A stretch of DNA of 64,000 bases from Phaeosaccion multiseriatum (taxonomy: Eukaryota > Protista > Ochrophyta, other classes): contig CBCOSG010000003.1 in the NCBI GenBank assembly GCA_965112735.1, positions 5,050-69,049 of the forward strand. Reading direction: 5' to 3'. A program made the position numbers and the translations under genes. Positions 1 to 12,293 of this stretch are shown here, one piece after another (position 1 is the stretch's first letter; each line of letters opens with the position of its first letter). A model generated the notes under the pieces. That model was given only the letters and a program-made list of their open reading frames with translations. It searched no databases and was not told the DNA's origin.

Positions 1-331
1 TCGATGAAGGACCAGTAAACTCACCTATTATTACATTATTAAATCTTAGTTTTAACCAAGTAACAAAATTTTTATTGGTAGAAACAAGAGCAATATTATT
101 CGTTAAACATTCTTTTTTTATTGATTGCAGTTCGGGAAGTTCTAAAAATTGAGGACTTGGTAATAACCAGAAATCTAAACGTTTTTCAATTGAGCGATAA
201 TATTCTACCCGTTCCCGTAGTACTTCTTCAAAAGGTTCATGAATTAAAAGAAAATTTTGACTCCCTAAAACAAAATAGTATTGACTTTCCATTTTCATAA
301 ATTTTAAATAATGCTTACTTATTATAAGCAT
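1..331 (-). CDS. ycf54: Ycf54 (5' part; IR mirror copy cut by window edge)
   Basis: Reverse complement of 11925-12255. Confidence 0.8.
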   Translation of the reverse strand, partial: MLIISKHYLKFMKMESQYYFVLGSQNFLLIHEPFEEVLRERVEYYRSIEKRLDFWLLPSPQFLELPELQSIKKECLTNNIALVSTNKNFVTWLKLRFNNVIIGEFTGPSS

Positions 332-657
332 TTTTAATCATATTTACCCATTTAATTTATCTTTTTCTTATTTATTTATTTTTAAGCTTAAACAAAAAAT
401 GATTATACTCTGGAGCCTAACTCAATAAAACTTAAAAAAGCAAGACATAGATTTAGTAAATTTACTTATTTTATATGTACGGATTTATATTATTTATACT
501 AATATGCAGAATGGTATTATTAAACGTATTAGAAATTGAGTCGAGTTTGGTTAACCTAGTCCTTCTTTTAAAGTTTGATAAGTAAAAACGCAAATAGATA
601 CAATCTCCATATTTTTAATTATTACAATCAACATAAATAAAAAAATAAACGATATTT

Positions 658-1072
658 ATGACAGCAAATTTAATAGCCATAGGAATTGGTATAGCAATTG
701 GGATCTCACCATTACGGGATTCCGCATTCGCAAAATTTTTAATTCTCATTACAGGAGGTTAAAAATTATGACAATGTTGCATATAATAGAAAGAGGCATG
801 TAGTAAAAAAAGGCCTGCCTTATCTGTTTCCCATTGGAAGAACAGTAAAGATTGCGCAGACGGGAATAAATGTGACAAATTCAACAAGTCCTGTAATATT
901 AGCAAAAAATATTACAGTCACTGTTGTTGATTGTTGCTCACCACCACCTGTACGGTTAGCGGCGCATTGTATTGGAGCGGAGGCTATTATTGCAGCCTCG
1001 GTTGTAAATCCGAATCCAATTACATTTGGGTCCGCTATGCATATGCTCGCAGAAATTTATGAAAAATGTTAA
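658..1072 (+). pseudogene. Hypothetical ORF, apparently frameshifted (34-aa hydrophobic ORF 658-762 plus open frame 743-1072 ending ...VVDCCSPPPVRLAAHC...EIYEKC)
   Basis: Manual translation: the frame of ORF 872-1072 stays open upstream to 743 and overlaps the end of ORF 658-762 in the +1 frame; GC-richer than flanking spacers. Confidence 0.5.
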
Positions 1073-1115
1073 TTAACTTAAATTATATTAATTAATATTT
1101 TTCATAAATTTCTGC
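1049..1115. terminator. 28-bp stem-loop at the 3' end of the hypothetical ORF
   Basis: gcagaaatttatgaaaaatgttaattaa pairs with ttaattaatatttttcataaatttctgc (one G-T pair), 11-nt loop. Confidence 0.7.
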
Positions 1116-1524
1116 TAGATACTCTCAGGCGTACTGGTGCGGATCCCCCTGCCAGGCAAAATTGTCTGCATCTCATCGCTAAAGGCTATTTCCTATGGGT
1201 GTATGAGCATAAGGGATCTATGCAATGCCCAACCTAAAAATCTATTATGTTAGATTCTAGGTTAGCATTTTCGCATTATGTTAGGCAGGTAATTAGAACT
1301 CTGCTATTTACACAAAGTTTAATCCTGTCTGCTTTTTTCGGCGTCATTACTCGTGTGTATTTAAACGGCACTATTGTGTAAATAAGTCTTGTAAATTAAT
1401 ACATTATTTAAAAATTCAATTTTTAAAAAATCATTAAAGCAAATAAATATAATAAATTTATTTACTTTAATTTTATATATTAGGATTTTTTATATAGTTA
1501 GAGAGTTATTAATAGAAAAAATAG

Positions 1525-1596
1525 TCCTCAGTAGCTCAGTGGTAGAGCAATCGGCTGTTAACCGATTGGTCGTAGGTTCAAATCCTACCTGGGGAG
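1525..1596 (+). tRNA. trnN: tRNA-Asn (GUU)
   Basis: tcctcagtagctcagtggtagagc...ctgttaa...ggttcaaatcc cloverleaf. Confidence 0.95.
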
Positions 1597-1663
1597 TTTA
1601 TAGAAATTATAATTTATTTATTAATGTTGTAGAATTTAGATAAATATTAATAAATAAATTTTC

Positions 1664-2470
1664 ATGGTTTTAACAAATAAATTAATAATTGGGAACAAAG
1701 CTTTTGATTCACGTTTAATGTTAGGGACTGGAAAATATAAAGATTTAAAAGAAACAAAAGAGAGTATTTTACAAAGTAAATGTGAGATTATTACAGTTGC
1801 AGTTCGTCGACTTGATTTACAAGGTATAGAAAAAAACTCAAATTTAATTAACTCTTTAAATTGGGATAAATTATGGCTACTTCCAAATACTGCAGGGGCA
1901 AAAACTGCTGAAGAAGCTATTAGATTAGGATTTTTAGGGAGAGAGATTGCTAAAAAAATTGGTCAAGTGGATAATAATTTTGTGAAACTTGAAGTTATTT
2001 CTGATTCTAAATATTTATTACCTGATCCAATTGGGACTATTAAGGCAGCAAAATTTTTAATCAAGAAAGGATTTACAGTTTTACCGTATATTAATGCTGA
2101 CCCTATGTTGGCTCAACACTTGGAGGATATTGGTTGCTCTACTATTATGCCTTTAGGCTCACCCATTGGTTCGGGACAAGGAATTAAAAATTTAACAAAT
2201 ATTAAAATTATTATCGAAAATGCCAGTATACCTGTTATAATTGATGCTGGAATAGGAAGCCCTAGTGAAGCTGCGCTAGCTATGGAGATTGGTGCTGATG
2301 GGGTACTAGTAAATACTTCAATAGCCAAATCTAATAACCCAACTCTAATGGCAAAAGCGATGAAAAATGCAGTAAAGGCTGGGTACCAGGGTTATTTAGC
2401 TGGTTGTATTAAATCTGAACCTTTTGCACAAGCAAGTTCTCCTATTTATGGAAGTAGCTTTTTAAATTAA
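1664..2470 (+). CDS. thiG: Thiazole synthase ThiG
   Basis: [40 protein letters not shown] motifs. Confidence 0.97.
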
Positions 2471-2546
2471 AAAAGAATATAGTACTTCTAGGATATTAAG
2501 TTATAAGATTTTACTTTTATATTCAAATAAATTCTGGAGATAAGAA

Positions 2547-9709: not shown

Positions 9710-9785
9710 TTCTTATCTCCAGAATTTATTTGAATATAAAAGTAAAATCTTATAACTTAATATCCTAGAAGTACTATATTCTTTT

Positions 9786-10592
9786 TTAATTTAAAAAGCT
9801 ACTTCCATAAATAGGAGAACTTGCTTGTGCAAAAGGTTCAGATTTAATACAACCAGCTAAATAACCCTGGTACCCAGCCTTTACTGCATTTTTCATCGCT
9901 TTTGCCATTAGAGTTGGGTTATTAGATTTGGCTATTGAAGTATTTACTAGTACCCCATCAGCACCAATCTCCATAGCTAGCGCAGCTTCACTAGGGCTTC
10001 CTATTCCAGCATCAATTATAACAGGTATACTGGCATTTTCGATAATAATTTTAATATTTGTTAAATTTTTAATTCCTTGTCCCGAACCAATGGGTGAGCC
10101 TAAAGGCATAATAGTAGAGCAACCAATATCCTCCAAGTGTTGAGCCAACATAGGGTCAGCATTAATATACGGTAAAACTGTAAATCCTTTCTTGATTAAA
10201 AATTTTGCTGCCTTAATAGTCCCAATTGGATCAGGTAATAAATATTTAGAATCAGAAATAACTTCAAGTTTCACAAAATTATTATCCACTTGACCAATTT
10301 TTTTAGCAATCTCTCTCCCTAAAAATCCTAATCTAATAGCTTCTTCAGCAGTTTTTGCCCCTGCAGTATTTGGAAGTAGCCATAATTTATCCCAATTTAA
10401 AGAGTTAATTAAATTTGAGTTTTTTTCTATACCTTGTAAATCAAGTCGACGAACTGCAACTGTAATAATCTCACATTTACTTTGTAAAATACTCTCTTTT
10501 GTTTCTTTTAAATCTTTATATTTTCCAGTCCCTAACATTAAACGTGAATCAAAAGCTTTGTTCCCAATTATTAATTTATTTGTTAAAACCAT
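9786..10592 (-). CDS. thiG: ThiG (IR copy)
   Basis: Same protein as 1664-2470. Confidence 0.97.
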
Positions 10593-10659
10593 GAAAATTT
10601 ATTTATTAATATTTATCTAAATTCTACAACATTAATAAATAAATTATAATTTCTATAAA

Positions 10660-10731
10660 CTCCCCAGGTAGGATTTGAACCTACGACCAATCGGTTAACA
10701 GCCGATTGCTCTACCACTGAGCTACTGAGGA
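10660..10731 (-). tRNA. trnN: tRNA-Asn (GUU), IR copy
   Basis: Reverse complement of 1525-1596. Confidence 0.95.
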
Positions 10732-11183
10732 CTATTTTTTCTATTAATAACTCTCTAACTATATAAAAAATCCTAATATATAAAATTAAAGTAAATAAAT
10801 TTATTATATTTATTTGCTTTAATGATTTTTTAAAAATTGAATTTTTAAATAATGTATTAATTTACAAGACTTATTTACACAATAGTGCCGTTTAAATACA
10901 CACGAGTAATGACGCCGAAAAAAGCAGACAGGATTAAACTTTGTGTAAATAGCAGAGTTCTAATTACCTGCCTAACATAATGCGAAAATGCTAACCTAGA
11001 ATCTAACATAATAGATTTTTAGGTTGGGCATTGCATAGATCCCTTATGCTCATACACCCATAGGAAATAGCCTTTAGCGATGAGATGCAGACAATTTTGC
11101 CTGGCAGGGGGATCCGCACCAGTACGCCTGAGAGTATCTAGCAGAAATTTATGAAAAATATTAATTAATATAATTTAAGTTAA

Positions 11184-11598
11184 TTAACATTTTTCATAAA
11201 TTTCTGCGAGCATATGCATAGCGGACCCAAATGTAATTGGATTCGGATTTACAACCGAGGCTGCAATAATAGCCTCCGCTCCAATACAATGCGCCGCTAA
11301 CCGTACAGGTGGTGGTGAGCAACAATCAACAACAGTGACTGTAATATTTTTTGCTAATATTACAGGACTTGTTGAATTTGTCACATTTATTCCCGTCTGC
11401 GCAATCTTTACTGTTCTTCCAATGGGAAACAGATAAGGCAGGCCTTTTTTTACTACATGCCTCTTTCTATTATATGCAACATTGTCATAATTTTTAACCT
11501 CCTGTAATGAGAATTAAAAATTTTGCGAATGCGGAATCCCGTAATGGTGAGATCCCAATTGCTATACCAATTCCTATGGCTATTAAATTTGCTGTCAT
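11184..11598 (-). pseudogene. Hypothetical frameshifted ORF (IR copy of 658-1072)
   Basis: Mirror sequence; same translated ORF. Confidence 0.5.
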
Positions 11599-11924
11599 AA
11601 ATATCGTTTATTTTTTTATTTATGTTGATTGTAATAATTAAAAATATGGAGATTGTATCTATTTGCGTTTTTACTTATCAAACTTTAAAAGAAGGACTAG
11701 GTTAACCAAACTCGACTCAATTTCTAATACGTTTAATAATACCATTCTGCATATTAGTATAAATAATATAAATCCGTACATATAAAATAAGTAAATTTAC
11801 TAAATCTATGTCTTGCTTTTTTAAGTTTTATTGAGTTAGGCTCCAGAGTATAATCATTTTTTGTTTAAGCTTAAAAATAAATAAATAAGAAAAAGATAAA
11901 TTAAATGGGTAAATATGATTAAAA

Positions 11925-12293
11925 ATGCTTATAATAAGTAAGCATTATTTAAAATTTATGAAAATGGAAAGTCAATACTATTTTGTTTTAGGGAGTCAAA
12001 ATTTTCTTTTAATTCATGAACCTTTTGAAGAAGTACTACGGGAACGGGTAGAATATTATCGCTCAATTGAAAAACGTTTAGATTTCTGGTTATTACCAAG
12101 TCCTCAATTTTTAGAACTTCCCGAACTGCAATCAATAAAAAAAGAATGTTTAACGAATAATATTGCTCTTGTTTCTACCAATAAAAATTTTGTTACTTGG
12201 TTAAAACTAAGATTTAATAATGTAATAATAGGTGAGTTTACTGGTCCTTCATCGAAATTAAAAAGTCCATTAGCTTATAACTGTATTTATTAA
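11925..12293 (+). CDS. ycf54: Ycf54 (Mg-protoporphyrin cyclase accessory protein); true start probably the later Met (MKMESQYYF)
   Basis: YYFVLGSQNFL..HEPFEEVLRER, DFWLLPSPQFLE, ALVSTNKNFVTWLKLR. Confidence 0.9.
   Translation: MLIISKHYLKFMKMESQYYFVLGSQNFLLIHEPFEEVLRERVEYYRSIEKRLDFWLLPSPQFLELPELQSIKKECLTNNIALVSTNKNFVTWLKLRFNNVIIGEFTGPSSKLKSPLAYNCIY

Follow-up and report, generated by a model that had tools for sequence, protein, structure and literature searches.

The question raised by the first 12,255 nucleotides (nt) of the stretch analysed here is what kind of chromosome could lie behind two very long inverted arms that appear to meet at a loop of six nucleotides. The stretch, hereafter the window, is 64,000 nt of a plastid contig of Phaeosaccion multiseriatum (G000:C19:5050-69049; the contig, C19, is 69,049 nt in total). 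The initial annotation read it as a giant fold-back palindrome without a recognisable single-copy spacer, and offered three explanations: expansion of the inverted repeat until hardly any small single-copy region (SSC) was left, a linear chromosome closed by a hairpin end, or a fold-back chimera of reads or assembly. The evidence assembled below supports, with a probability of about 0.9, an ordinary circular-mapping, four-part ochrophyte plastome with a short SSC, combined with a consensus artefact over that SSC in C19. The long mirrored arms are a normal plastid inverted repeat, the centre between them is the SSC blended with its reverse complement, and the artefact is confined to window positions 4617-7639.

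The palindrome as written in C19

Window positions 1-4619 are complementary to 7637-12255 and, when the whole contig is considered (including the 5,049 nt upstream of the window), the pairing extends to C19:1-9668 with 12686-22354, at 99.93% identity over 9,669 nt, the left arm being truncated by the start of the contig. To this extent the description of giant inverted arms was sound; its figure of at least 6.1 kb on each side was not, because the inner 3,017-3,023 nt (4617-7639) are only 48-83% complementary per 100 columns, with numerous gaps, and about 70% complementary overall. The identity of the arms is lost 1.5 kb short of the axis, and the outermost ~230 nt of the centre are unrelated between the two sides, the left side having rpl27 and the right side rpl34 and the first part of ccs1. 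All of the SSC genes except rpl27 are damaged in this centre, the features of which are as follows (C22 is a sister contig, L035 a contig from a relative or another strain, and X5 a public run, all taken up below).

4617-7639: SSC in its C19 form, a corrupted consensus of 3,023 nt (2,839 nt in the clean version of C22)
4609-4854, plus strand: rpl27, intact; its first 8 nt (ATGGCACA) are part of the inverted repeat
4867-6007, plus strand: ORF345, broken and blended in C19; open over 345-347 codons in C22; intact in L035
6071-7426, minus strand: ccs1 (ResB family), in at least five pieces in C19; nearly whole in C22; 425 amino acids and intact in L035
7491-7647, minus strand: rpl34, frameshifted in C19 by an extra T at about 7639; intact in C22; the extra letter is missing from the X5 contigs
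6124-6153: a 12-6-12 hairpin, ttgctctattag-TTTTCC-ctaatagagcaa, in C19 only

The hairpin around the six-nucleotide loop does exist where it had been reported, but as a whole only in C19; the sister contigs C18, C20 and C22 contain one half each. Its left arm is authentic coding sequence, consisting of the minus-strand ccs1 codons for TNRAK (within the conserved ccs1 motif GGK-TNRAK), and its right arm is a mirror copy of the left arm, produced by the consensus. In C19, ~10 nt separate the axis of the hairpin from the midpoint of the SSC, and in C22 the TNRAK motif is likewise ~10 nt off the geometric midpoint of the SSC. The midpoint is precisely where the axis falls when a segment is overlaid with its reverse complement.

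A small single-copy region without a palindrome

Five AT-rich (~30% GC) contigs in the assembly, overlapping each other at 98-100% identity, belong to the plastid:

C18, 108,425 nt
C19, 69,049 nt
C20, 55,657 nt
C21, 30,185 nt
C22, 26,674 nt

They give redundant coverage of one plastome of ~145 kb: C18:1-95916 corresponds to C19 plus C21, and C22 is placed entirely inside the succession of repeat, SSC and repeat. Their gene content is that of a red-lineage plastid (thiG, psaC, ccsA, rpl21, rpl27, ccs1, ycf54, secA, psbA and rpoB), with an rRNA operon in the order 16S-trnI-trnA-23S-5S and tRNAs that are intron-less. The nearest named relatives of the ccsA protein, 59-66% identical, are those of ochrophytes (among them Chrysoparadoxa, Discosporangium, Vaucheria and Dictyotopsis).

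The SSC in C22 is 2,839 nt long, and encodes rpl27 and an open frame of 347 codons (ORF345) on one strand, converging upon ccs1 and a complete rpl34 on the other. Its ccs1 covers residues 1-219 and 224-425 of a reference protein of 428 amino acids. When the left half of each centre was compared with its right half by global alignment, the identity was 69.6% in C19, 71.4% in C18 and 63.9% in C20, and 50.7% in C22, against 51-52% for shuffled controls; correspondingly, blastn between the halves gave 74% over 1,310 nt for C19, and no match for C22. A palindromic centre is therefore not a property of the SSC in C22. For the same reason a further candidate, in which the centre was a real but decayed palindrome made up of ccs1 and a ccs1 pseudogene, was rejected: the halves of C22 are dissimilar, and the left half is an unrelated open gene.

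Independent evidence for the C22 version came from ORF345, which has one match in a collection of 5.8 billion proteins. That match, of 345 amino acids and 95% identity, is encoded by the Logan contig L035 (2,917 nt, run SRR29999183), which is collinear with C22 at 94% and in which rpl27, ORF345, a 425-residue ccs1 and rpl34 are all intact. At its two ends L035 has one 30-nt sequence, inverted at one end relative to the other and ending in ATGGCACA, followed by rpl27 on one side and rpl34 on the other. Thirty identical terminal nucleotides are what would be expected of a contig builder (with a word size of, presumably, 31 nt) that stops where a repeat begins. The SSC of this relative is 2,857 nt long and non-palindromic, and its only self-complementarity is an imperfect hairpin of 60 nt, placed where the two genes converge, between their stop codons. 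With four genes and no palindromic centre in either C22 or L035, the statement that a recognisable single-copy spacer is missing can be set aside.

A consensus blended from the SSC and its reverse complement

The repeat flanking the centre is identical in C18, C19, C20 and C22. The centres themselves, when placed in one orientation, differ from that of C19 by 5-9% in C18, C20 and C22 over a wider stretch, and locally by far more, in a mosaic fashion. An alignment of the eight half-centres of these contigs resolves into two types, one ‘left’ (beginning with rpl27) and one ‘right’ (beginning with rpl34 and ccs1), and several of the contigs interleave both. In the left half of C18 and the right half of C20 this has produced rpl27/rpl34 chimeras, with both sequences present in succession.

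The halves of C22 could then be used as clean parent sequences for tests of blending on C19. At 259 of the 327 positions (79%) where the left half of C19 departs from the clean left half it carries the base of the clean right half, a share that falls to 30% when the right half is shuffled; in the reverse test on the right half of C19, 70% of departures carry the clean-left base, against 25% in the shuffled control. Only 49% of the 13-nt words of the C19 centre are found in the clean SSC, and nearly all of the others occur in it in neither orientation, so that the mixing is base by base and not in blocks. The blended SSCs are also longer (3,023, 3,071 and 3,108 nt in C19, C18 and C20, compared with 2,839 nt for C22 and 2,857 nt for the relative), as a merger of two unrelated sequences would make them.

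Public sequencing runs, consulted as assembled contigs only (X1-X5), offered a further view, X5 being from another sample and another study. The SSC pieces in X5 lack letters at the very positions at which C19 and C22 part (4864, 4876, 6605, 6612 and 7639), and an X5 contig bears a 17-nt overhang, after position 4894, that C18, C20, C22 and L035 share at the corresponding position and C19 lacks. Other readings of these runs were discarded. An indexed-word share of 0.59 in X1-X4 had been taken as absence of the C19 centre, but the query share of the repeat itself is 0.58, the clean parts of the SSC are likewise without contigs in these runs, and such holes prove nothing; two overhangs in X4, at 6054 and 7713, are not junctions and proved to be other places in the plastome that share AT-rich words of 17-19 nt with the centre.

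The process that may have produced such a blend can be reconstructed from its product. Where a plastome has an inverted repeat, two isomers with opposite SSC orientations usually coexist, and in this assembly the rpl34 side of the SSC adjoins the rpoB end of the large single-copy region in C19 and the chlI end in C20. A reverse-complemented long read of one isomer would fit the 15-kb arms of the other perfectly, across an SSC of 2.8 kb, and reads of both orientations could in this way be pooled into the consensus of one contig. The columns of the SSC would then be voted on by two unrelated sequences, giving a base-by-base blend with partial self-complementarity, broken reading frames, an increased length and a small perfect hairpin at the midpoint. 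With roughly equal numbers of reads, about half of the mirror pairs would be complementary and, with chance matches in AT-rich sequence added, an apparent self-complementarity of ~65-70% would be anticipated, which is close to the values of C19 and C18. The repeat with its boundaries, the clean SSC and the blending of the C19 centre are shown by the sequences; that mixed-orientation reads caused the blend is what we infer.

Several points weigh against this account. The pooling of two orientations is read from its product and not from raw long reads, and the contig L035, at 94% identity, belongs to a relative or to a different strain and not certainly to the same organism. The ccs1 of C22 (L004:2190-3519) still contains two frameshifts in runs of A relative to the intact 425-residue gene of the relative; the assembly has homopolymer errors, and its organelle contigs need short-read polishing. 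Because C22 lies inside the succession of repeat, SSC and repeat, it does not by itself show the orientation of the SSC relative to the ends of the large single-copy region. Finally, the X5 contigs of the inner SSC are shallow (depth 2.8-5.4, below the 14-18 of the SSC-edge contigs), which could also mean real heterogeneity of sequence.

This last observation, together with the fact that four contigs display four different centres, is what a real heteroplasmy would lead one to expect: a minority of plastomes would carry an SSC partly palindromised by strand or template switching across the short interval between 15-kb repeats, and C18, C19 and C20 would represent real variants. Such a state is nevertheless very improbable. 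The clean halves of the SSC share no similarity and so provide no substrate for homologous exchange; the mixing affects single bases and brings in many insertions; rpl34 and ccs1 are destroyed by it, and rpl27/rpl34 chimeras arise; and the independent sample, where it can be compared, agrees with the version in C22.

The repeat, its outer ends and the circular map

The artefact of consensus proposed for the centre leaves the arms intact, and these lead outward as a plastid inverted repeat should. The features of the two copies, and of the sequence beyond, are listed here.

1-4616: inverted-repeat copy A, inner part; extends 5,049 nt upstream, to the start of the contig
1525-1596, plus strand: trnN(guu)
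1664-2470, plus strand: thiG
2547-2792, plus strand: psaC
2884-3807, minus strand: ccsA
4283-4597, plus strand: rpl21
7640-22929: inverted-repeat copy B, complete, 15,290 nt
Gene order in copy B: rpl21 (minus), ccsA (plus), psaC (minus), thiG (minus), trnN (minus), ycf54 (plus), secA (plus), trnL(uag) (minus), psbA (minus)
Order in copy B after psbA: 5S, 23S, trnA, trnI and 16S (all minus), then psaM (plus) without its final codons
22930-26570, plus strand: start of the large single-copy region on the C19 side, with the final psaM codons and then rpoB (22977-26570)
Plastome map: large single-copy region ~112.0 kb; inverted repeat 2 x 15,290 nt; SSC ~2.84 kb; total ~145.4 kb

The rRNA operon (5S, 23S, trnA, trnI and 16S, at 17767-22608) lies within the repeat, which stops at 22929. 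C19 and C20 are identical through this position, in the last codons of psaM, and are unrelated from 22930 onward; past the repeat C20 contains 28.4 kb present in no other contig, which encodes chlI, ftsH, psbD, psbC and clpC. The last 2,401 nt of C18, in turn, are an exact reverse complement (100%) of C20:53235-55635. The overlap of the tails of C18 and C20, combined with the branching of C19 and C20 at 22929/22930, closes the circular map. Repeat contigs in the runs from the same organism start exactly at 7640, the repeat boundary, and in X5 the depth over the repeat is 40.8, compared with 14.3 and 18.3 at the two edges of the SSC, or roughly 2:1 (a rough measure, since these are word depths of contigs).

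These results bear directly upon the idea that the left arm of C19 is itself artefactual, in which case the plastome would contain a single copy of the 15-kb segment and the whole arm would be a fold-back chimera. All four of the contigs that bear a centre do start inside an arm, as that idea would have it. However, the arm sequence is joined to one end of the large single-copy region in C19 and, unchanged, to the other in C20, the circle is closed by C18 and C20, contigs of the repeat are about twice as deep as those of the SSC edge in the independent sample, and the SSC contig of the relative has the same 30 nt, inverted, at both of its ends. In a fold-back chimera, furthermore, the arms should be identical up to the turning point and should lack outside support, and neither is true here, the repeat being backed by other contigs, by another sample and by a relative. 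A chimeric arm is accordingly very improbable, slightly more so than heteroplasmy. The suspicion of an artefact was well placed for the inner 3 kb, which arose as a blend of consensus and not from a fold-back read.

The remaining possibility, that the plastid chromosome is linear and covalently closed by a hairpin at about 6139, has nothing in its favour but the look of C19, with its long arms and the 12-6-12 hairpin on the axis, and is refuted, given that the inner 3 kb up to the apex are unpaired, that the complete hairpin is missing from the three sister contigs, that the clean SSC and that of the relative are non-palindromic with four genes, that the arms lead outward into different ends of the large single-copy region (rpoB in one case, and chlI, ftsH, psbD/C and clpC in the other), and that the circular closure of the map excludes a chromosome ending in a hairpin at the axis. 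Hairpin-ended linear DNAs are known from the telomeres of poxviruses and Borrelia and from the hairpin plastid chromosomes of Cladophorales, and are read out as a long palindrome with a tiny loop; in such DNAs the arms are complementary up to the loop and share a single outward continuation, and both features fail here.

Expansion of the inverted repeat, the first explanation in the initial annotation, came closest: the SSC is indeed short, but it is a non-palindromic region of 2,839 nt with four genes and not a six-nucleotide loop.

Details of the repeat and of the SSC genes

Six mismatches separate the two copies of the repeat in C19, all of them at 4522-4584 and in the left copy only. They fall in the left copy of rpl21, where each substitutes T or A for G or C and where, collectively, they alter five residues of L21; they are missing from the other seven copies of the gene in four contigs. 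These six substitutions are probably consensus errors near the junction. At the other end of the repeat, psaM (window 22816-22956; C20:24703-24825) spans the junction with the large single-copy region, such that its C-terminus differs between the two junctions, one of the two ending in ...GTALYS. A 94-nt element within the repeat (535-628 and 11628-11721) recurs in the large single-copy region, at C20:34435-34528, with 95.7% identity; no tRNA was called in it by ARAGORN.

The junction between repeat and SSC falls after base 8 of two different genes, since rpl27 and rpl34 both begin with ATGGCACA (4609-4616 and 7640-7647), and each of them is preceded by a copy of rpl21 with an identical spacer and start codon. 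The position of the junction is the same in the independent relative (L035:1-30 and 2888-2917). An exact look-up of the rpl27 and rpl21 proteins of the window in public assemblies gave no match, and a scan of metagenomes with the ccs1 of the relative as query gave no relatives.

ORF345 has no family in Pfam or NCBIfam, and a protein atlas returned only a weak lead to TIC20, with a score of 0.85. Plastomes of pelagophytes and dictyochophytes contain ycf60 genes of 273-388 amino acids, one of them near ccs1 (PMC13582874), and ORF345 is possibly a protein of this ycf60/Tic20-like kind, an assignment to be treated as a lead only. It also matches (E 3e-32, through to the C-terminus) an unnamed open reading frame of 289 amino acids, arranged tail to tail with ccs1 on a plastid contig of a distant relative, so that the pairing of ORF345 and ccs1 is an old neighbourhood. 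The two nearest long public contigs with ccsA supplied both this tail-to-tail pair and the full-length ccs1 reference (428 amino acids); around ccsA itself their gene order differs, and they are uninformative on the size of the SSC. The spacer of 81-96 nt between the convergent ORF345 and ccs1 contains a stem-loop (~20 base pairs and -24.9 kcal/mol in the relative, L035:1336-1395) that probably serves to delimit and protect the two transcripts at their 3' ends.

Comparison with known plastomes and significance

The architecture that emerges is already known in kind, and the expectation of an unusual plastome, raised by the appearance of C19, has given way to a short SSC beside a long, gene-rich repeat. 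Chrysophytes and synurophytes have a very short SSC (711-2,939 bp) beside long gene-rich repeats (PMC6330437), that of Poterioochromonas being 1,619 bp (PMC8405094). The plastomes of Ochromonas sp. CCMP1393, Synura, Mallomonas and Poterioochromonas malhamensis resemble the present one in the short SSC and in much of the gene set found in or near the repeat (ccsA, psaC, psaM, psbA, rpl21, secA, the rRNA operon, rpl27, rpl34 and ccs1). They differ from it in the length of the repeat (22.5-31.6 kb, compared with 15.3 kb here); in the present plastome, moreover, rpl27, rpl34 and ccs1 are single-copy and make up the SSC together with ORF345, ycf54 lies within the repeat, and thiG is present. The closest named relatives of its ccsA, furthermore, are not chrysophytes, and the alga therefore probably belongs to a different class. 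Diatoms of the genus Climaconeis, according to the account of PMC8268801 given in PMC13582874, have expanded the repeat at the expense of the SSC until what remains is gene-free; on that account the same growth of the repeat at the cost of the SSC can be recognised here, where the SSC retains four genes. Flip-flop isomerism of the SSC would likewise be unexceptional, its two orientations permitting both kinds of read to be pooled, and only the handling of the consensus is unusual in the present case.

For the use of the assembly, it follows that window positions 4617-7639 of C19 are unfit for annotation or use as they stand, as are the corresponding stretches of C18 and C20, and that ccs1, rpl34 and ORF345 look like pseudogenes in C19 only because of a corrupted consensus. 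One circular plastome of ~145 kb, containing a polished version of the SSC of C22, should take the place of the five redundant contigs. As a general rule, a long-read consensus can turn a short SSC between long inverted repeats into a false, near-perfect palindrome, and comparison with sister contigs and with contigs built from short reads is a safeguard against it. For the biology of the group, Phaeosaccion multiseriatum, with an SSC of 2.84 kb, adds to the ochrophytes in which this region is short, a result of modest comparative interest.

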